A stretch of DNA of 64,000 bases from Hyalangium minutum. Its GTDB lineage: Bacteria > Myxococcota > Myxococcia > Myxococcales > Myxococcaceae. The position numbers were made by a program, and so were the translations under genes. Every line of letters begins with the position of its first letter. The stretch's first letter is position 1. The stretch lies in the NCBI RefSeq assembly GCF_000737315.1, contig NZ_JMCB01000005.1, positions 62,001-126,000 of the forward strand, given 5' to 3'. Positions 6,847 through 63,839 of this stretch are shown one piece after another. The notes below the pieces were generated by a model. It worked only from the letters and a program-made list of their open reading frames with translations. It ran no database searches and was not told where the DNA came from.

Positions 6847-7307
6847 CGGTTTTGCTCCTCGACTGGACTGGTCAAGACCCAGCGCCCGGGCTTCTGGGCT
6901 CGCTGCTGTGATTCGGTAACCCCCCAGAATTTGGCAATCAATGAGGGGTGATTCAGACCCGCCCCATCGACTTCCGACAGGTGTGGTTGTAACGCATTTT
7001 TTTTATTCGGGTCAAATAGAATGGGTAAAAAATCTCTACCCTGCGAGATTCTTTGGCAAGTGGGAGTGTGTTGATCTCTTAGGTTTTCAGTCCTGGCAAA
7101 AAACACGCAACATTTTCCCCGGGTGGGTGAGGAATGACTCACATGCGGAAAATGACCCAGGTGGGATGAACAGCCATCTCGGCCTGGAGACTGAGAGAAA
7201 AAGGACTACCCAGAAGGTTCTATCTGGGATTGATCGGATAGCGGGGCTCTGGATCGAGGCGTGATCCAGGCCTCAACAGGGCAGGAGCAACCGGGGCTGT
7301 GGGTGGG

Positions 7308-7652
7308 TCAGTTCAGCCAGCGCGGCACGCCGGACTCGGGGGACTGCTCCTCCGAGAGCCAGGCGATGGAGAGCTCATCGCCCAGGGCCGTGTCGAAGTT
7401 CGCGGCGATGACATATCCCGCAGGCGTGGCCTGGCAGCGGAGGATGTTCAGCCGCGTCCGAGGGATGAGCAGCTCGGGGATGCTGGCCTCGATGGATTGC
7501 CCGGGCTCTACGGGCACGCGAGACAGCAACAGGCAGCCGCTGGCCGAGGCATTGATGATGTCCGCGTCCAGCACTTCACGGGGGCAGTGGAGCTTGATGG
7601 CCAGCCGCAAGGGGTACCGTTGGTGCCGACGCCGCTCGTTGTCGTAGGACAC
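7308..7652 (-). CDS. Stand-alone PilZ-domain protein
   Basis: GTG start after AGGAGG; RRHQR (RxxxR) and NASASG (NxSxxG) c-di-GMP motifs. The upstream part of the 496-aa ORF is an antisense shadow of the DUF1684 gene. Confidence 0.8.
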   Translation of the reverse strand: MSYDNERRRHQRYPLRLAIKLHCPREVLDADIINASASGCLLLSRVPVEPGQSIEASIPELLIPRTRLNILRCQATPAGYVIAANFDTALGDELSIAWLSEEQSPESGVPRWLN

Positions 7653-7865
7653 GGGATGCCTCCTGACGCGCTGCCCGTCATCCACGGCGGGACATGAGGT
7701 GAAACAATATGCGGGTTTCATACCGAGAGGCAGCCCTTGCGGCTTGTCTACATCGGCATGCAATGTGTTGCATGGGGTTGACAGGTGAGCAAAAGAAGGG
7801 TTTTTGTTTTCAATGTGTGTCTTTGAAGTCCCGCAGATACATTTAGGGGAAGGCGGGGCCCTGAC

Positions 7866-8801
7866 ATGGTGGTCCTCATGAAATGGAGCTCCCTGTTGTT
7901 GGTGTCCCTGGGCCTTGCTGCTCCAGTGAGCGCTGCGCCCCCATCCACCCCCAAACCTTCCACCCCGCCCATGAATGCCTCTCCTGGAATCGAAGCCGAG
8001 ACCCGTGCCTGGCACACCGAACGCGTCTCCCGGCTGACGTCGGACGATGGGTGGCTCACGCTGGTGGGGCTGCATTGGCTCAAGGAGGGCGCCAACCGCT
8101 TTGGCTCTGCGCCGGACAATGACGTGGTGTTCCCGGCGGCCTTTCCCGCTCATGCGGGCACCTTCACCCGGAAGGGAGCCACGGTGAGCCTCGCGCTCGA
8201 GAAGGGCACGTCCCTGGCGCTGGAGGGCAAGCCCTTCACCGGAGGCGCGCTGCGCAGTGATGCCGACGGCAAGCCGGACACGCTGGCGCTGGGCTCCGTG
8301 CGCTTCTTCGTGATTCGCCGCGGCGATCGGCTGGGCGTGCGGGTGAAGGACTCGGAGGCGCCCACGCGCAAGGCGTTCCACGGCATCCCCACCTACGCCC
8401 CAAGCGCCGCCTGGCGGGTGGAGGGGCGCTTCGAGCCCGCCACCACCGAGAAGAAGATCTCCGTTCCCAATGTGCTGGGCGAGGTGGAGGAGATGGTGTC
8501 CCCGGGCACCGTCGTCTTCACCGTGGGAGGTCAGGAGTACCGGCTCTCGCCGGTGCAGGAGCCGGGCGAGGATCAGCTCTTCTTCATCTTCGGAGACCTG
8601 ACCAACCGCGATGAGACGTACGGCGCGGGCCGCTTCCTGTACGCAGCCATGCCGAAGGAGGGGAAGGTGGTGCTGGACTTCAACCGGGCCTACAACCCGC
8701 CGTGCGCGTTCACCTCGTTCGCCACCTGCCCGCTGCCGCCGTCGCAGAACCGGCTCAAGGTGCGGGTCGAGGCCGGAGAGAAGCGCTACGGCGACCACTG
8801 A
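7866..8801 (+). CDS. DUF1684-family exported protein
   Basis: Signal peptide (start may be ATG 7878); GWLTLVGLHWL, TYGAGRFL, LDFNRAYNPPCAFTSFATCPLPP..N.L...VEAGEK. Confidence 0.85.
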   Translation: MVVLMKWSSLLLVSLGLAAPVSAAPPSTPKPSTPPMNASPGIEAETRAWHTERVSRLTSDDGWLTLVGLHWLKEGANRFGSAPDNDVVFPAAFPAHAGTFTRKGATVSLALEKGTSLALEGKPFTGGALRSDADGKPDTLALGSVRFFVIRRGDRLGVRVKDSEAPTRKAFHGIPTYAPSAAWRVEGRFEPATTEKKISVPNVLGEVEEMVSPGTVVFTVGGQEYRLSPVQEPGEDQLFFIFGDLTNRDETYGAGRFLYAAMPKEGKVVLDFNRAYNPPCAFTSFATCPLPPSQNRLKVRVEAGEKRYGDH

Positions 8802-8813
8802 GCCAGCGCACGC

Positions 8814-9947
8814 TCATGCCGCCGAGAGCTTCAGGTCCTTGTTCAGTCCAGCGTCCCGGCTCACGCGCCAGATCTTCTGATCCAGGTAGTAGTGGTGCAG
8901 GGCGAAGCCCCAGATGAAGCCCGAGGCCAGGTCTCTCAGCGAGAGGCCTGCGCCGAGCATCAGCTTCGCGTCGAACGTGCCGCAGCCGGGGTGCAAGCCG
9001 AAGCCGCAGCCCAGCGCGCGGTAGGCCAGGGTGAAGGCCACGCCACACGCCGCATAGATGAGGAAGCGCCCGCTGATGCGCGGCGCGAGCCCGAAGTCGG
9101 CGTGCTCCACGCCGGGCCCGTGGTAGCGGTTGCGGTGATAGAACCAGACGATGCCGTGGTACTGGACGTTGTGGAACGCCGTCACCACCACGGCGACCAT
9201 GAGAAACTCCACGCGGCGCGCCACCCCGGGCAGGAAGAGCAGCACACTCAGCCCGATCGCCGCAGCCAGCAGCAGCACCTTGGGCCCGTTGATGCCGAGG
9301 CCCTGGCGCCACCGCTGGAACTGCCGCGCGGCGAAGAGCGCCACCACCGCGAAGGTCACCGCCCAGCACGCCCAGGCCAGGTTCTCCTCCACCCCCGGCT
9401 GCGGCCCCAGCCCGAGCAGCCTGCGCGCCACCGGGTGCGTGACGGCGAAGGCCCCGAACGGCGCCAGCAGCCCTCCATACAGCGTGAGGCTGTCCACCCG
9501 GCGATCCACTGGGAGCGTGTCCCGGTTCTTCCGCTGGTAGAGCGTCATCAGCCCGTAGTGCTGGCGCACCACGTGCCAGTAGGCCCACAGGCTGGCGAAG
9601 GTCAGGAACAGGTCGAACGGCAGCCGCTGGCCCAGCAGCACCGAGACCCCAAAAATCAGGGGACCCGCGGCGAACCAGCCCAGGCTGCCGAGCAGCAGCC
9701 GGCGCCTCGCCGTGCGCTCCCGACGGTCCAGGTAGGTCCTCGAAAGCGTGGCGAAGATGTGCGGCCCGTCCAGCGTGAGCACCCACATCCACCACAGCAC
9801 CAGGCCGCTCACGCCCACGCCCAGATGGAGGCCGAGCAGCACGAGGCTCGCAGCCAGCCCTCCCACGGTGGAGAGCAGATCATGCCGGCGATCGACGAGC
9901 CAGCCCGCGTGCAGGGGGACGGCGGGGGCGGCGGAGACTGCGCTCAT
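8814..9947 (-). CDS. Polytopic membrane protein with four conserved His motifs (function unknown)
   Basis: Multiple hydrophobic helices; DGPHIFAT, YWHVVRQHYG, FHNVQYH, LHHYYLDQKIWR. Confidence 0.7.
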   Translation of the reverse strand: MSAVSAAPAVPLHAGWLVDRRHDLLSTVGGLAASLVLLGLHLGVGVSGLVLWWMWVLTLDGPHIFATLSRTYLDRRERTARRRLLLGSLGWFAAGPLIFGVSVLLGQRLPFDLFLTFASLWAYWHVVRQHYGLMTLYQRKNRDTLPVDRRVDSLTLYGGLLAPFGAFAVTHPVARRLLGLGPQPGVEENLAWACWAVTFAVVALFAARQFQRWRQGLGINGPKVLLLAAAIGLSVLLFLPGVARRVEFLMVAVVVTAFHNVQYHGIVWFYHRNRYHGPGVEHADFGLAPRISGRFLIYAACGVAFTLAYRALGCGFGLHPGCGTFDAKLMLGAGLSLRDLASGFIWGFALHHYYLDQKIWRVSRDAGLNKDLKLSAA

Positions 9948-10114
9948 TCAGGGCTCCTGCGACGCGTGGGGTCCGAGCCCGTCAAGGATGCCATGGGGTG
10001 GGTGGATCCGCTGGGTGAGGCATGTGCCTACACAGTGAAGGTGCGGCCAAACAAGCGTGCTTTGGGGAAATTAAGAGCTTGAGCGAGGGGTATCGGAGCG
10101 CGACAGTTCTGATC

Positions 10115-13100
10115 ATGGAACAGGGGCGGCGCGCGACAGACCGGAAAGCCGTAGGTCTGCTGGTGAAGCTCAAGCACTCGGATGTGGGGAGCTTCGCAGA
10201 GGAGTTCGCCACCAACTTGAGCCCTGGCGGCATGTTCATTCGCACGCGTACACCGCAGGCGGTGGGCACGCTTGTGAAGTTCGAGGTGCAGATTGCCGGC
10301 GGCGTCCGCGTGCTGCGCGGCACGGCCGTGGTGCGCTGGGTGCGCGAGACGACCAACGAGGAAGGCCCTCCGGGCATGGGGCTCCAGTTCCAGGAACTGG
10401 ACCCGGTCACCCAGTCGCTCATCGATCGGATGCTGCAGCTCAGCAAGGCGGCCGCTTCAGCGGGTGGGGCCGCGGCGGCGGGGGACAAACCCTCCGTGGA
10501 CGTGGAGGCGCTGGAGCGGGAGATGCTGGCCAAGGGCATGCTGGACCGGGTCGGCAAGCGCATCACCGCCTCGCGCCTGCCTGCCATCGCGCCCTCCGTT
10601 GCCCCGGTCTCCCGAACGGCGCCCAAGCAGGGCCCCGGTGCGAAGCGCCAGGCCGAGGAGCTCCCCTCGGGCCCGATGCTGACCGATGAGCGGCTGGAGG
10701 AGAGCGCCGATCTGGGCGACCTCATGGACGATCTCGAGTCGATGGGCTCGCAGATCGGCAAGCCCGGCAAGCCGCCCGTGTACTCGGTGCACACGGCTCC
10801 CACGCCCGTGCCCCTGGCCGTGCCCCCTCCCGGCGAAGATGACGTGAACATCGCCGTCGATGACCTGCTTTTGGTCACCCCGGAGTCTGCTTCCGCGTCC
10901 TCCGAGGTGAAGTTCGAGGTCGTCGACGAGCCCATGCCCGACATCGACTTCGAGATGGAGTCGTTGGGCGGGGATCTGCCCGTGGCCGTGGGCATGGCGC
11001 TGGAGGACGCCGAGGTGGCCCCCGTCCTTCAGGGCCAGCCCGTGCCTCCTCCTCCTCCGGCTGCACCCGCTCGTCCTGCGGCTCCGCTGCCGCCCGTGGC
11101 GAAGGCCTACCCTGCCGTAGCGCCGCAGCCTGCTCCCTCTGTGCAGGCTGCTCCGCCCCCGCCCCCGGTCTCCGCCGCGCCCCAGGTCCCGCCGCCCGCT
11201 CCGCCGCCTCCGGCCGCTCCGCCGCCTCCTCCGGCCGCCGCGGCTCCTCCAGCTCCGCTCAAGCCTGCGTTCGACGTGGATGTCGAGCTGGGCCTCATTG
11301 GCCCCAAGCTGGTGAACCAGTCGGACTCGCCGGACTTCAAGCCTGGCAAGGGCGTGGAGTTCGAGCTGAACCTCGGAAGCGGCGAGGACATCGACGTCGA
11401 CAAGCCGGGTCAGAAGCCTCGGCGCAAGCCTCCCAACCGCGCGCCGCCGCTCCCTGCCGCTACGCCTCCGTCTTCAGGGCCCGCGCCCTCGGCTCCTCGT
11501 TCGTTCCCCGCGGGGGCGCCCGAGGCTCGTGCGGAGGCGCCGCGTCCCGCTGCGCCCGTTCCCGGGAGCGCTGCCGCGCCTGCGCCCGCGCCTCCCCGGC
11601 CGCCGGTTCCCGAGGCTCCCCCCAAGATGGTCTTCCCGCCGACCGTCTTCCTGCATCCGCCCGAGCCAGTGGTGGGCACGGGGCCGGTGATAGGCATCGA
11701 TCTGGGCACCACCAACTCGTGCGTGGCCATCATGACGGGGGGCCGTCCCCAGGTGTTGCGCTCGAAGGAGGGCTACAACACCATCCCCTCGGTCATCTCG
11801 ATCAGCTCGCAGGGCAAGCTGCTCGTGAGCCACCGGGCCAAGAGCCAGCTCGTCATGCGCCCCACGCAGACGGTCTACGGCGCGAAGCGCATTGTCGGCC
11901 GTCCCTATGAGAGCGCCGTGGTGAAGCAGGTCCGCGAGCGCTTCCACTACGAGATCGTCCCCGACGCGCTGGGCCGTGCCGCCGTGCGCGTGGCCGACAA
12001 GGTGCTCTCGCTGGAGGAGGTGCAGGGCCTCATCCTCAAGGAGTGCAAGGAGATGGCTGAGCAGCACCTCGGCCAGAAGGTGGAGCGGGCGGTGGTGACG
12101 GTGCCCGCCTACTACTCCGAGCCGCAGCGCGAGGCCGTGCGCAAGTCCGGCGCCCTGGCGGGCCTGAAGGTCGAGCGCATCCTCAACGAGCCCACCTCCG
12201 CGGCGCTGGCCTACGGCCTCAACCGCGAGATGGACAAGCGGGTGCTGGTCTACGACCTGGGCGGCGGTACCTTCGACGCGACCATCCTGCGCATCGAGAA
12301 GAACGTCTTCGAGGTGCTGGCCACCGGCGGTGACATCTTCCTGGGCGGTCTCGACCTCGACAACGCCATCGTCGACTTCCTGCTGGAGCGCTTCCAGCAG
12401 CTGGAGAACGTGCCCTTCCAGGGAGACGGCGTGGCCCTGTCGCGCGTGAGTGACGCGGCCGAGAAGGCGAAGATCGCCCTCTCCGAGCGCCAGCACTACG
12501 AGGTCCATATCCCGATGCTGATGATGGACGAGATCGGCCGACCGAGGGACCTCAACTTCACGATGACGCGCGCGGACCTGGAGCGCATCTGCGAGAGCCT
12601 GGTGTCGCGCACGCTGGATGTGGTGCGGGACGTGCTGCTGGACGCGCGGCTGAAGCCCAGCGACATCGACGACATCATCCTCGTGGGCGGTCAGGCGCGC
12701 ATGCCGCTGGTGCGCGAGAAGATCAAATCGCTGTTCGGCAAGTCGGCGCACTCGAGCGTGAACGCGGACGAGGCGGTGGCGCTGGGCGCGGCGCTGTACT
12801 CGACGGCGATCGACAAGGTGAGCAGCGTGGTGCTCATCGACGTGCTGCCGATGACGATCGGTCTGGCGATGCCGGGCGGCTCGTTCCAGCGCGTCATCGA
12901 GCGCAACACCCCGCTGCCGGCGCAGCGCTCGTTCGCGGTGGCGACCTCCCGGGACGACGAGGAGGTGCTGGAGCTGTCCATCTTCCAAGGAGAGGACAAC
13001 CACATCTCCGCCAACGAATACCTGGGCACCGTGCGGCTGGAGGGACTGCCGAAGGGCCCGAAGGGCTCGGTGCGCGTGGCGGTGACGATCAAGCTGGACG

Positions 13101-58576: not shown

Positions 58577-59731
58577 ATGCGTCTTGGAATGCATTCGAAT
58601 CGGAGGCCCGGCAGGTTCACCCATGCGCTGGCGGGACTGTGCCTGCTGTTGGCTGCGGCTTGCGGCGCCGCGCTGCCTGGGGAGGAGGCGGTGGACTTGA
58701 GCACCTACGCCGCCCCCCTGGGCAGCTGCTCACCCGACGTGACGCCTCCCTCCGTGAGGTGCCAGCCCGAGGGAGGCATCCGGGAGTGCATCGCCTATGG
58801 CTACATCGTCCAAGATTTCGACCTCGTCACCGCGAGCGACAACTGCGGGATTACCTTCTCGAGCCACAGTCTTGGCAACCTCGGCGGAGTCGGCTCCACG
58901 AGCACCTCCGTCAGTTACTGGGACGCGGCGGGCAACGCCGCCGGCTGCTCGTCGCAGTGGTCCATCGTCGACAGCAGTCCGCCCACTGTGACCCTGAACG
59001 GCCAGGTGCAGATCGTCCTGGCCTATGGTGCTTCGTACGTGGAGGCGGGCGCCTACAGCAGTGACATCTGTGATGGGTCCTTGGACTGGCGCATGAATCG
59101 CTCGGGCGGGTTCAGCACCTCCGTACCGGGCATCTATCCCATCACCTACAGCGTGGCGGACTCGGTCGGACACGTCACCCAGCGCACCCGCCTGGTGACC
59201 GTGCTTCCCCAAACAGACTGTACGGCCCAGCTCGCCGCGCCGGTGCTCATGCTCCAGGGCCGTCATGAGGAGACGCTGGAGTGCGGCCGCAACACTTGGA
59301 GTGAGCCCGGGGCCCTGGCCGCGGATGCGTGCGGCGCGGTGACGGTGCACACCTACAACTCGGGCCAGGATCCGTACGGCCCTGGTCCCAACTCAAAGGC
59401 TGAGGGGCGCTACACAGTGCAGTACCTCGCGTGGAACGGGCAGGGGACGACGTCTGCCGAGCGCAAGGTCATGGTGCAGGACACCCTCCCGCCGATACTC
59501 CGTCTCAAGGGCCCCATGCGCATGACGCACACGTGCGGCAGCGCATGGGTGGACCCGGGTGTCCTGGCCACGGACTCCTGCTATGGGGATGTCTCCTCCT
59601 CCGTGCAGACCACCGGTTCGGTGAACGGATGGGCGGAGGGCACGTACACGGTGACCTACCAGGCGAGAGACCCCGGCGGCCACCTCTCCAACATCCAGAA
59701 TCGCGTGGTGGAGGTCGTCGACTGCCCTTAG
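58577..59731 (+). CDS. Lipoprotein of HYR/DUF5011-type Ig-like repeats
   Basis: ATG after AGGAGG; lipobox LLAAC; repeats D..PP...L.G......CG..(Y/W)..PG..A.D.C.G......GS......G.Y.VTY...D..G.....R.V.V. Confidence 0.78.
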   Translation: MRLGMHSNRRPGRFTHALAGLCLLLAAACGAALPGEEAVDLSTYAAPLGSCSPDVTPPSVRCQPEGGIRECIAYGYIVQDFDLVTASDNCGITFSSHSLGNLGGVGSTSTSVSYWDAAGNAAGCSSQWSIVDSSPPTVTLNGQVQIVLAYGASYVEAGAYSSDICDGSLDWRMNRSGGFSTSVPGIYPITYSVADSVGHVTQRTRLVTVLPQTDCTAQLAAPVLMLQGRHEETLECGRNTWSEPGALAADACGAVTVHTYNSGQDPYGPGPNSKAEGRYTVQYLAWNGQGTTSAERKVMVQDTLPPILRLKGPMRMTHTCGSAWVDPGVLATDSCYGDVSSSVQTTGSVNGWAEGTYTVTYQARDPGGHLSNIQNRVVEVVDCP

Positions 59732-60642
59732 AAGGCCCGATTCACCGCGTAGCCGCAGATCTTGTGTTCGGCTGTGTAGGTATTCGGGCCGGGATTCCCA
59801 TCGATGGGGCCCGTGTAGCCGAAGCTCCGGCCGACGGTCTGGACGCGAGTCCAGTAGATGTATCCGGGGATCCCATCTTCCTGCGCGGAGGTGCGAGGCC
59901 CCCCGCGGTTGTTCAGCTCGCGTGCGGTGATCCTCACGCGAACCTTCTCCGTGTTGGGCCCGGTGATTCCATCAATGGGCCCGGTGTAGCCAAAGTCGCG
60001 TTGGCCGACGGTCTGAATGCGCTTGTAATAGATGGGGCCAGGGATGCCGTCTTGCTCGGTCGTCGTTTGGGGCAGACTGCTTCCCCCTCCTCCCGGAGGG
60101 GCTCCGCCGCCGGCAATCCGGCCGCCCGCGTAGTCCATGGACCAGCCGAGGTACCGCGCCCCCGTCCTGCTCGAGTAGCCGGAGACGCTGTTGACGCCGA
60201 TGGCGTCTCCCCAGGACTCGGCAAGGTTCCGGGTGGCCATGAAGACAGTCGTGCCACCGCCATTGAGGTCGGCACCGACGTGACCGTAAGCACCGATGTC
60301 CCACCAGTGGAACGCCCCGGTGAGAGCGGTCGCGGGGTTCGTCGAGACGATCGTCGACGCGTGATAGGCCAGGATGGCGCTGTCACGGGCCGAGGAGGCG
60401 GGGAGCTGACCAAAGCGCCACATCAGCGAGCCGCACCACTGGTCCCACGAAGCGCCGTCTCGCTTGGGGTTGGCGGCAGCGTAGGCCCGTGCTCTGTCGT
60501 AGATGGGCGAGTTCAACTCGGCCGTGACGGTGCTCAGCTCGGCCGCGTCGGCAGCCACGTCCTCAGGGGGTTCGCCGCACGAGGCAAGCACGACGCTTGC
60601 TGACAAGAGTGCGGTGGTCCAAATCATTCGTTTCGAGTGCAT
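59728..60642 (-). CDS. Lipoprotein with CHAP/NlpC-like Cys-His domain and two C-terminal putative peptidoglycan-binding repeats
   Basis: ATG 60642 after GGAG; lipobox VLASC; WDQWCGSLMW and GAYGHVG; Gly linker; two DGIPG.IY..R.QTVG...GYTGPIDG..GPNT repeats. Confidence 0.7.
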   Translation of the reverse strand: MHSKRMIWTTALLSASVVLASCGEPPEDVAADAAELSTVTAELNSPIYDRARAYAAANPKRDGASWDQWCGSLMWRFGQLPASSARDSAILAYHASTIVSTNPATALTGAFHWWDIGAYGHVGADLNGGGTTVFMATRNLAESWGDAIGVNSVSGYSSRTGARYLGWSMDYAGGRIAGGGAPPGGGGSSLPQTTTEQDGIPGPIYYKRIQTVGQRDFGYTGPIDGITGPNTEKVRVRITARELNNRGGPRTSAQEDGIPGYIYWTRVQTVGRSFGYTGPIDGNPGPNTYTAEHKICGYAVNRAF

Positions 60643-60885
60643 CAGCGATCTCCAGGTGTGCCGGGCAAGGGGTGGACGTGTGCTCTTCAAGGCGCCGAAC
60701 CTCGGGGCCACCGTGGGTTGTCGGCGGGAGGAGGCCATAAGTTTCCAGTCGCGGGCGAGGGCCCGGCGGCGCAGGAGGCGCGAACGGCCAGATCCCAGCG
60801 TACAGGGGCGCACTCATGTCGATTGTCGAATCGAGTTTCCGGGCTCGTGGCCGGCGCTTAATCCTCGTGCCGGAGGAATCCAAGC

Positions 60886-62729: not shown

Positions 62730-62813
62730 GAGCGCAGGGGGATGCTGTATCAGCCAGCCACCCGACTGGTGTATGCAGCCGCATCCCCCCGTCGTATGCC
62801 TGAGGAGTCTCCG

Positions 62814-63839
62814 ATGCGTCGTCTCGGTCCCTGCCTTCTTGTCGCGAGCCTGCTGGCCGGTTGCGGTCCTGCCCAATCCGAACCGTCTTTCACCCCGTCA
62901 CTCGATCGCGAGGCCGCGTCGCTCACCACCACGGACGTGGATGTGGCCCCAGAGTGCCAGGGCATCCTCACCTTCGTGAACACGGCATCCTTCGAGACAC
63001 TGGACGCGTACCTTCCCAGCGACGCTGCCAGCAACCTCGTCGCCCGCCGCTCGACGGCGCCCTTCGCGACGCTGGCGGAGGTCTCCGCCGTCAACCTGAT
63101 GGGCCCGGTTCGCCTGACCCAGATCGAGTCGGGTGCCCGTGCTCTCGGCTACATCGACAGCACCTGTGCCGGCATCCTGGACGAGCTCGCTCTCTCTTCC
63201 GATGACGCCGCGGCGGTGGTGTCCCTGGTGAACACCGTGAGCGCCAGTACCCTGTACGCTGTCCTGCCTCACGCGTGGAATGGCGCCACGAACCTCATCA
63301 ACCTGCGTCCGTTCACCTCGGCCCAGGCCATCTCCAACGTCAGCGGCATCGGCGCGGTGAGCCTGCGGAACCTCCGCAACGCCGCCACGATGGGGTACTC
63401 CCTGGAGGTGCTCGTCTCTGCGGTGAACGCCCTGCCCGAGGACGAGTGGACCGTGAAGCTGGATCAGTCCTTCGAGGTGGCAAATGTCATCGCGGGGGAG
63501 CATGGGAATGGGCGCAACAACGGGGGGACCTGCTTCGGCATCGACCCCAGCACCTTCCCGAGCACTTGGACGAACCGCCCGACGCTGGCCACGGCCACCG
63601 AAGTTCGCGACTACGTCGCGAGCGCCGCCTCTTTCGCCAACTACGTCCACAACTACCCGATCTCGAGTGAGGTCGTCACGGAGGGCCTGGCGAATCTCGA
63701 AACGCGCATCGCTGGCCGCACGTTCAAAGGCTGCCATCTCAGCTACAGCAAGGGCCCGTGGGGCGGCATCCAGGTTCACTTCTTCGTCGACACGGAGACG
63801 GGCTTCCGGATCCTGACGGAGCAGCACTGGGTCGAGTGA
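62814..63839 (+). CDS. Lipoprotein with two helix-hairpin-helix-like repeats and an unknown C-terminal domain
   Basis: ATG 62814 after GAGGAG; lipobox LLAGC; repeats (F/L)VNT.S..TL...LP......(L/I).....PF.(T/S).......V..(M/I)G...L. Confidence 0.7.
   Translation: MRRLGPCLLVASLLAGCGPAQSEPSFTPSLDREAASLTTTDVDVAPECQGILTFVNTASFETLDAYLPSDAASNLVARRSTAPFATLAEVSAVNLMGPVRLTQIESGARALGYIDSTCAGILDELALSSDDAAAVVSLVNTVSASTLYAVLPHAWNGATNLINLRPFTSAQAISNVSGIGAVSLRNLRNAATMGYSLEVLVSAVNALPEDEWTVKLDQSFEVANVIAGEHGNGRNNGGTCFGIDPSTFPSTWTNRPTLATATEVRDYVASAASFANYVHNYPISSEVVTEGLANLETRIAGRTFKGCHLSYSKGPWGGIQVHFFVDTETGFRILTEQHWVE

Follow-up and report, generated by a model that had tools for sequence, protein, structure and literature searches.

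A predicted lipoprotein of Hyalangium minutum built from lysin-like modules: an unannotated Cys/His domain family and a candidate exapted endolysin

CHAP endolysins (PF05257; PlyPy, Lys2972, PlyGRCS and LysK-type enzymes) have a papain-like fold with the catalytic Cys at the N terminus of a helix and a His at the start of a beta-strand, and they are modular, the catalytic domain being followed by a linker and wall-binding repeats. The NlpC/P60 lipoproteins of Escherichia coli (MepS/Spr and NlpC; PF00877) combine a lipobox with a papain-like Cys/His domain. In the myxobacterium Corallococcus silvisoli, a phage-endolysin-like GH19 lysozyme, C25GH19B, has demonstrated bacteriolytic activity and a proposed role in predation (PMC9098779). 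Here we describe a gene on the minus strand of a 64,000-nt stretch of the Hyalangium minutum genome (contig NZ_JMCB01000005.1), which we call the window and within which all coordinates are given. Its product is very probably an exported, lipid-anchored peptidoglycan hydrolase. With CHAP endolysins it shares the predicted fold, the placement of Cys and His and the modular order, and it has relatives that are predicted lysins in phage contigs; unlike them, it has no PF05257 match, carries a second invariant His (FHWW) instead of the usual Glu/Asn third residue, bears a lipoprotein signal peptide and is encoded on the chromosome, outside any prophage or lysis cassette. It resembles the NlpC/P60 lipoproteins in its lipobox, its papain-like Cys/His domain and its best PDB fold match, but it has no PF00877 match, and it differs from MepS and NlpC in an added PG_binding_1-like tandem repeat and in having lysins of phages and mobile elements as relatives. 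Finally, like C25GH19B it is a predicted myxobacterial wall hydrolase with phage lysins as nearest relatives; it would be a Cys peptidase or amidase rather than a GH19 glycosidase, its sequence is unrelated, and its activity is predicted, whereas that of C25GH19B was measured.

The protein consists of a leader, a short linker, a Cys/His domain of 130 aa, a Gly-rich linker and two repeats of 56-58 aa. A preliminary description of this DNA had listed the same parts (leader, WCG Cys, GHVG His, Gly linker, two repeats) and was accurate when we read the open reading frame again. The leader, MHSKRMIWTTALLSASVVLAS-C22, displays the pattern recognised by signal peptidase II, with the n-region MHSKR, the h-region MIWTTALLSASVV and the lipobox L-A-S-C22 (pattern [LVI][ASTVI][GAS]C), and the residue at +2 is Gly. 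The lipobox is kept in all aligned homologues from Myxococcaceae and Archangiaceae, and both the sequence pattern and this conservation bear out the lipoprotein leader that had been proposed. We place the start of translation at the ATG at 60642, because a GGAG sequence lies upstream of it and the leader start M-H/Q-S/T-K is common to all close homologues. The mechanical open reading frame extends upstream of this ATG as far as a GTG at 60813, while the public gene call (P0001, 276 aa) begins only at Val29 and thereby loses the part encoded at 60559-60642, which contains signal peptide and lipobox. More distant Myxococcota relatives have tethers of 60-170 aa in place of residues 23-42. Four of these (P0076, P0111, P0117 and P0120) carry a DUF5018 (Ig-like) domain together with Asp/Ala/Pro-rich tethers of that length between lipobox and catalytic domain, which suggests long-reach display at the cell surface in some Myxococcota relatives.

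The catalytic domain, modelled alone with AlphaFold2 (AF2), gave a predicted local distance difference test (pLDDT) score of 92.6 and a predicted template modelling (pTM) score of 0.89. When this model was compared with the PDB using Foldseek, the best match was the NlpC/P60 domain 8er5 (probability 0.99, template modelling (TM) score 0.54-0.59, E 0.024), followed by the CHAP endolysins PlyPy, Lys2972, PlyGRCS and Ly7917 and by the CHAP archetype Gsp amidase, so that the top neighbours were NlpC/P60 or CHAP hydrolases throughout. Against the predicted viral structures of BFVD the best match was a phage "CHAP domain-containing protein" (E 6.9e-7, TM score 0.71, root-mean-square deviation 3.2 Å over 140 columns); Microbacterium phage Min1, Arthrobacter phage Noely lysin A and Streptomyces phage Muntaha hydrolase came next, and then several phage proteins annotated as NlpC/P60 or CHAP. 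A two-domain model gave a weak Foldseek result (best E 0.24), and Foldseek was informative only with the catalytic domain modelled by itself. Sequence profiles behaved differently: the window protein does not match Pfam CHAP even at E <= 10, nor NLPC_P60 (PF00877), no Pfam, NCBIfam or PHROG model covers the domain in scans of these libraries, and neither a whole-protein sequence search nor family-profile searches against the PDB returned anything significant for it. When 47 diverse relatives were scanned singly, ten gave weak CHAP matches (best E 2.7e-4) and one a weak NLPC_P60 match (E 0.012). The model predicts an alpha+beta fold of papain type, in which C70 opens a helix and H121 opens a strand. 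Judging from the model, the catalytic domain is a divergent, uncurated branch of the CHAP/NlpC-P60 superfamily. The label "CHAP-type" given to this papain-like Cys/His hydrolase in the preliminary description is thus correct at the level of the superfamily, because of the fold and the transitive, weak matches of its relatives, and does not extend to membership of PF05257 or PF00877. Literature searches found no paper on this domain family.

Conservation of the candidate catalytic residues was counted over 216 domain instances. A conserved Cys followed by a conserved His, as in CHAP domains, is present in the form of C70 and H121, and the position of Cys70 at a helix start and of His121 at a strand start in the model is the classical papain-like arrangement. 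A further conserved His, His112, was absent from the preliminary description and lies nine residues before H121. The complete Cys/His/His/Met signature is kept by the window protein and by 202/216 relatives. We compared the family profile with E. coli MepS using hhalign; the alignment was non-significant, and in it the GHVG His falls on MepS His119 and "VFMAS" on "fVHAS", so that the position of MepS His131 is occupied by Met135, a residue that is Met in 204/216 instances. A weak, likewise non-significant profile match to MagC aligned the GHVG His with the His of the MagC HLMIW segment. The two non-significant alignments agree in placing "P.GAFHWW" on the "GDLvFF" strand and "GHVG.DL" on "HVGIY". 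The NLPC_P60 triad pattern, with a third residue about 12 positions after the first His, is therefore not found in the window protein, Met135 being there instead. Because the canonical third-His position of NlpC/P60 holds a near-invariant Met, His112 is the probable third residue and, as read from the alignment, likely substitutes for the canonical His.

The three instances that lack the Cys (P0095, P0099 and P0123, all metagenomic) form one clade in which the GHV His is lost as well: Ser stands in place of the Cys, and Leu, Val or Ile in place of the GHV His, while His112 is kept. The lipobox and the binding repeats are retained in P0095 and P0099. At the level of sequence, the joint loss of Cys and GHV His fits a Cys/His dyad and a derived pseudo-enzyme, and this clade may be a pseudo-enzyme offshoot that perhaps only binds peptidoglycan.

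The C-terminal repeats are identical at 30/54 positions, and their local alignment score of 154, compared with 24 +/- 5 for 2000 shuffles (z = 25.8), is far above chance. PG_binding_1 (PF01471) matched the window protein only partially (residues 216-233; 14.8 bits, E 0.033) and below the cut-off of 23 bits, while 25 of the 30 aligned relatives matched the model, with a best E of 7.5e-10; the repeats had been called PG_binding_1-like, and the relatives uphold this although the window copy itself is sub-threshold. A family profile searched against the PDB pointed to the peptidoglycan-binding domains of SleB, of a Streptomyces Zn D-Ala-D-Ala carboxypeptidase and of an endolysin (E 0.02-0.07). The version found in Myxococcaceae and Archangiaceae is a derived tandem, and in the model its unit has two long helices and a short one. 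The only matches of the repeats among 50,697 phage genomes were five endolysins (lysin A) of Microbacterium phages. The lysin A proteins of phages Triscuit, Huwbert, Armstrong and Clayda5 have in common with the window protein the repeat unit "(D)G(I/V)PG..(Y/W)..(I/V)Q....(F/Y)GYTG.ID..PG..T"; they differ from it in their N-terminal catalytic domain and lack a signal peptide, and the database-wide E values of these matches are modest (1e-4 to 3e-3). With Triscuit lysin A, identity reaches 41% over 79 aa (pairwise E 5e-10), with the unit "GVPG..W..IQ....YGYTG.ID.NPG" in common. When the C-terminal part alone was searched, the named non-myxobacterial relatives came from Streptomyces, Leifsonia, Curtobacterium, Hamadaea and one Limnocylindrales metagenome-assembled genome (MAG), and are thus almost all Actinomycetota.

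The catalytic domain belongs to a broad family, its profile retrieving 652 clusters (50% identity) at E <= 1e-3 and 447 at E <= 1e-10. In 100 of the 216 instances the domain begins no more than 12 residues from the N terminus, and these proteins are hence leaderless. Among 42 sampled relatives the domain is fused to GH25 (13), PG_binding_1 (6) or LysM (3), which are endolysin-type architectures; the PHROG "endolysin" matches of relatives cover the GH25 and peptidoglycan-binding parts and never the Cys/His domain. Relatives at about 29-43% identity (most about 40%) lie on 18 IMG/VR contigs with a GC content of 41-65%. On one of these (UViG_3300025600_000014, here L042), a leaderless homologue of 198 aa is encoded downstream of large tail-like genes. 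At 7344-8984 of this contig, genes for a 209-aa protein with a C-terminal transmembrane segment, the 198-aa Cys/His-domain protein and a 129-aa protein with an N-terminal transmembrane segment follow one another, an order that looks like a lysis cassette. Another relative (P0145), in which the domain is fused to GH25, is encoded on a 61-kb unidirectional phage-like contig together with SSB, a Rad52-type recombinase and a beta-helix protein. Leaderless relatives are thus found in the lysis-cassette context of phage endolysins (L042, P0145). A Cryobacterium copy (P0118; Sr3 contig SOFA01000010.1) has a TrwC relaxase gene in the same 18-kb locus. At 7235-10742 of that locus (L057), it adjoins a gene for a 775-aa Rv2525c-like glycoside hydrolase with PG_binding_1, and the setting looks like a conjugative element carrying two wall hydrolases. 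These phage and mobile-element contexts confirm the predicted use of the leaderless relatives as lysins. On sequence grounds, both modules of the window protein come from families in which the leaderless members are phage endolysins or are encoded on actinobacterial mobile elements. The link to lysins of actinobacteria and actinophages, proposed in the preliminary description, is accordingly borne out by the Microbacterium phage matches and actinobacterial relatives of the repeats and, for the N-terminal domain, by relatives in phage contigs and in the actinobacterial conjugative element. As a separate observation, a 233-aa relative from the "eukprot" source (P0097) has 51% identity over 60% of the query, lies within a eukaryotic protein set and groups with a second clade, whose members bear signal peptides and are taxonomically unassigned; it could be a contamination or a transfer into a protist.

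Orthologues with the same leader and 72-85% identity are present in Stigmatella, Melittangium, Cystobacter, Pyxidicoccus, Corallococcus and several Myxococcus species, and thus span genera of Myxococcaceae and Archangiaceae. Sandaracinaceae, Bradymonadia and other Myxococcota MAGs have relatives that are 45-55% identical and combine a lipobox with long tethers of low complexity. When 161 domain sequences were placed in a neighbour-joining tree, the exported Myxococcota forms, which come from several orders, made up a single short-branched clade among long-branched, paraphyletic leaderless forms. Recent horizontal transfer was rejected, the GC content of the gene (65.6%) and its GC at third codon positions (GC3, 0.80) being near the values of its neighbours. 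Any transfer must then have been ancient and followed by vertical descent, given the single clade, the native composition and the orthologues across genera. The claim that the gene was horizontally acquired is plausible in this restricted form, as an ancient event, and does not hold for a recent one. The pattern-based scan, which yielded 37 loci, contained no M. xanthus locus, and many Myxococcota species representatives were likewise without a locus there. Partial matches to the C-terminal repeats, at 95% and 59% identity, were found in a 73-aa protein of Hyalangium gracile (P0270) and a 79-aa protein of Cystobacter ferrugineus (P0279), which are probably remnants of decayed copies. From these fragments and the missing M. 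xanthus locus we infer gene losses, and the truncated fragments also argue that the gene is dispensable. On the simplest account, a lysin was captured once in ancient times and gained an export signal, after which the gene descended vertically, with losses along the way. Vertical inheritance together with a housekeeping role in division had been named beforehand as an outcome that would speak against a predation weapon; the inheritance is indeed vertical within this lineage, while a division role is unsupported, given the absence of a division or wall context, the patchy distribution and the decayed fragments.

In the mechanism that we propose, signal peptidase II would cleave the leader and Cys22 would be acylated, and the Gly at +2 would make sorting to the outer membrane probable. 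The short tether would carry the papain-like domain, in which Cys70 would act as nucleophile, His121 as general base and His112 probably as third residue, and the bond cut would be the MurNAc (N-acetylmuramic acid)-L-Ala amide or a bond of the stem peptide or cross-bridge. The Gly-rich hinge and the tandem repeats would dock the enzyme on peptidoglycan. As to origin, a leaderless lysin would have been acquired long ago by a Myxococcota lineage, with an export and lipidation signal added. Concerning its role, we favour a predatory attack on foreign cell walls, launched at the cell surface or by vesicles, over a part in the growth of the producer's own sacculus, and give this attack a probability of roughly one half. 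A prey-directed role is favoured because of the lysin ancestry of both modules and the proximity of the binding module to lysins of phages of the Gram-positive Microbacteriaceae, because the gene is dispensable, patchy and without wall or division context or an immunity gene, and because the bacteriolytic phage-like GH19 lysozyme of Corallococcus sets a precedent. More tentatively, and with the balance of our judgement somewhat on the negative side, an ancient phage or actinobacterial endolysin may have been captured by a Myxococcota ancestor, equipped with an export signal for lipoproteins and turned into a surface or vesicle weapon specific for Gram-positive cell walls of actinobacterial type, its uncurated CHAP-like Cys-His-His family serving as a lysin domain of environmental phages.

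Several points weigh against a captured, prey-directed lysin. The Foldseek E values against the PDB are marginal (0.024 and above), and the window protein lies below every curated threshold of hidden Markov models, with no CHAP or NLPC_P60 match and a sub-threshold PG_binding_1 score. The catalytic domain was unmatched in the 50,697 GenBank phage genomes when four queries (the domain and three leaderless relatives) were used in tblastn, and its phage link therefore rests on metagenomic viral contigs and on structure. The direction of transfer is not proven by the neighbour-joining tree, since this was midpoint-rooted and without bootstrap support, and the GC3 of the gene, slightly below the 0.84-0.91 of its neighbours, carries no foreign signature. 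Moreover, PG_binding_1 domains lack specificity for walls of Gram-positive type, the myxobacterial wall is itself remodelled or removed in sporulation, and the combination of lipoprotein and NlpC/P60-type domain is also that of E. coli MepS and NlpC, which are autolysins of the cell's own wall. Delivery in vesicles is plausible and purely inferred.

The neighbourhood of the gene holds a LigB dioxygenase, an AraC regulator, an Ig-like surface lipoprotein, citrate synthase and signal peptidase I, with no cell-division or wall-synthesis genes in this context. A prophage setting was rejected, the window neighbours being without a lysis cassette, holin or spanin. With one convergent and one divergent neighbour, the gene is monocistronic. 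The convergent neighbour (58583-59731, plus strand) is itself predicted to encode a lipoprotein (LLLAAAC), which has HYR and PKD domains and two Bact_surface_Ig-like domains; its TAG stop at 59729-59731 overlaps the TAA stop of the gene at 59728-59730, which leaves neither intergenic space nor a terminator between them, and other genera do not conserve it as a neighbour. A further predicted lipoprotein (LLAGC), with a weak helix-hairpin-helix match (HHH_3/T2SSK-like), is encoded downstream of signal peptidase I (62742-63839, plus strand). Across the 37 loci no adjacent gene is conserved, neighbourhoods being kept within genera, differing between them and in no case matching that of the window, and no adjacent cognate immunity gene was found; the ideas of an operon partner and of an immunity gene were rejected in this synteny test. 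The features of the gene are collected in Table 1.

Table 1. Features of the candidate lipoprotein hydrolase gene of H. minutum, in window positions
Feature	Position	Strand	Basis and remarks
GGAG ribosome-binding site	60650..60653	-	Sequence reading; 7 nt upstream of ATG 60642
Complete CDS (coding sequence), candidate lipoprotein peptidoglycan hydrolase	59728..60642	-	304 codons plus stop at 59728-59730; ATG at 60642
Type II lipoprotein signal peptide, residues 1-22	60577..60642	-	Lipobox pattern L-A-S-C22, Gly at +2; conservation
Acidic Ala-rich tether, residues 23-42	60517..60576	-	Predicted disordered; pLDDT <50 at residues 22-42
Catalytic domain, residues 43-174	60121..60516	-	AF2 model, Foldseek, weak CHAP matches of relatives
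Cys70 codon (WCG), predicted nucleophile	60433..60435	-	Present in 213/216; N-terminus of helix 70-77
His112 codon (FHWW), candidate third catalytic residue	60307..60309	-	Present in 214/216; strand preceding GHVG strand
His121 codon (GHVG), predicted general base	60280..60282	-	Present in 213/216; opens beta-strand
Gly/Pro-rich interdomain linker, residues 175-190	60073..60120	-	Sequence; pLDDT <50 at residues 185-188
Repeat 1, putative cell-wall-binding, residues 191-248	59899..60072	-	Repeat statistics; PG_binding_1 weak; helical in AF2 model
Repeat 2, putative cell-wall-binding, residues 249-304	59731..59898	-	Repeat statistics; 41% identity/79 aa to Triscuit lysin A

Among the alternatives, the one that survives best is a housekeeping or conditional autolysin, in which the protein would be a periplasm-facing outer-membrane lipoprotein acting as endopeptidase or amidase on the cell's own wall, either in elongation in the manner of MepS and NlpC or in the formation or germination of myxospores. 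The window protein has the MepS/NlpC design (a lipobox and a papain-like domain of NlpC/P60 type, with the fold match) and aligns its GHVG His, non-significantly, with MepS His119, but both of its modules are nearest to lysins of phages and actinobacterial elements and not to proteobacterial autolysins. The PG_binding_1-like module would bind the own sacculus equally well; synteny with division or wall-synthesis genes is nevertheless absent, and the neighbours vary by genus. Vertical inheritance across Myxococcaceae and Archangiaceae with native composition also suits an autolysin, whereas the lack of an M. xanthus locus among the 37 loci, the many Myxococcota representatives without a locus in the pattern scan and the truncated fragments in H. 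gracile and C. ferrugineus, which suggest dispensability, do not. On balance we consider an autolysin unlikely, though it is the most serious competitor of the prey-directed role.

Much less probable is a lipoprotein toxin of kin discrimination, passed on by TraA/B outer-membrane exchange or acting as a Tae-like effector of the type VI secretion system (T6SS), which would harm the wall of a recipient unless this is immune. Myxobacteria pass outer-membrane lipoproteins to one another by outer-membrane exchange, the Tae effectors belong to the papain-like amidases, and the lipobox and the patchy distribution of the gene would be in keeping with such a toxin. However, there is no conserved small adjacent gene for immunity, the neighbours being unrelated enzymes that vary by genus, the gene is monocistronic, and the orthologues, at 72-85% identity, are without the hypervariable C-terminal pattern of polymorphic toxins. 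Least probable of all is a non-catalytic lipoprotein for wall binding or adhesion, with the Cys/His domain serving only as a scaffold for binding, a role that has been proposed for MagC of Pseudomonas, which is NlpC/P60-like: the weak profile match to MagC speaks for it, and the clade that has lost Cys and GHV His and kept lipobox and repeats shows that non-catalytic forms exist, but the Cys/His/His/Met signature is intact in the window protein and most relatives, a pattern that points to purifying selection on catalysis.

Otherwise, wall hydrolases that join a Cys peptidase to peptidoglycan-binding repeats in modular fashion are very well known, and a phage-like lysozyme has been described from a myxobacterium before (PMC9098779). 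The main interest of the locus, which we regard as moderate, is the unannotated lysin domain family together with a candidate exapted endolysin. With about 650 clusters at 50% identity, the family defined by the catalytic domain is sizeable and includes proteins of phages, Actinomycetota and Myxococcota, and because it is covered by no Pfam, NCBIfam or PHROG model, lysins of this family are now annotated as "hypothetical" or by their GH25 or peptidoglycan-binding parts only; a curated model of the domain would improve the annotation of endolysins. If the prey-directed role is true, the protein would show clearly how an endolysin can become the exported weapon of a predator, and it would be a candidate lytic enzyme against Gram-positive bacteria.

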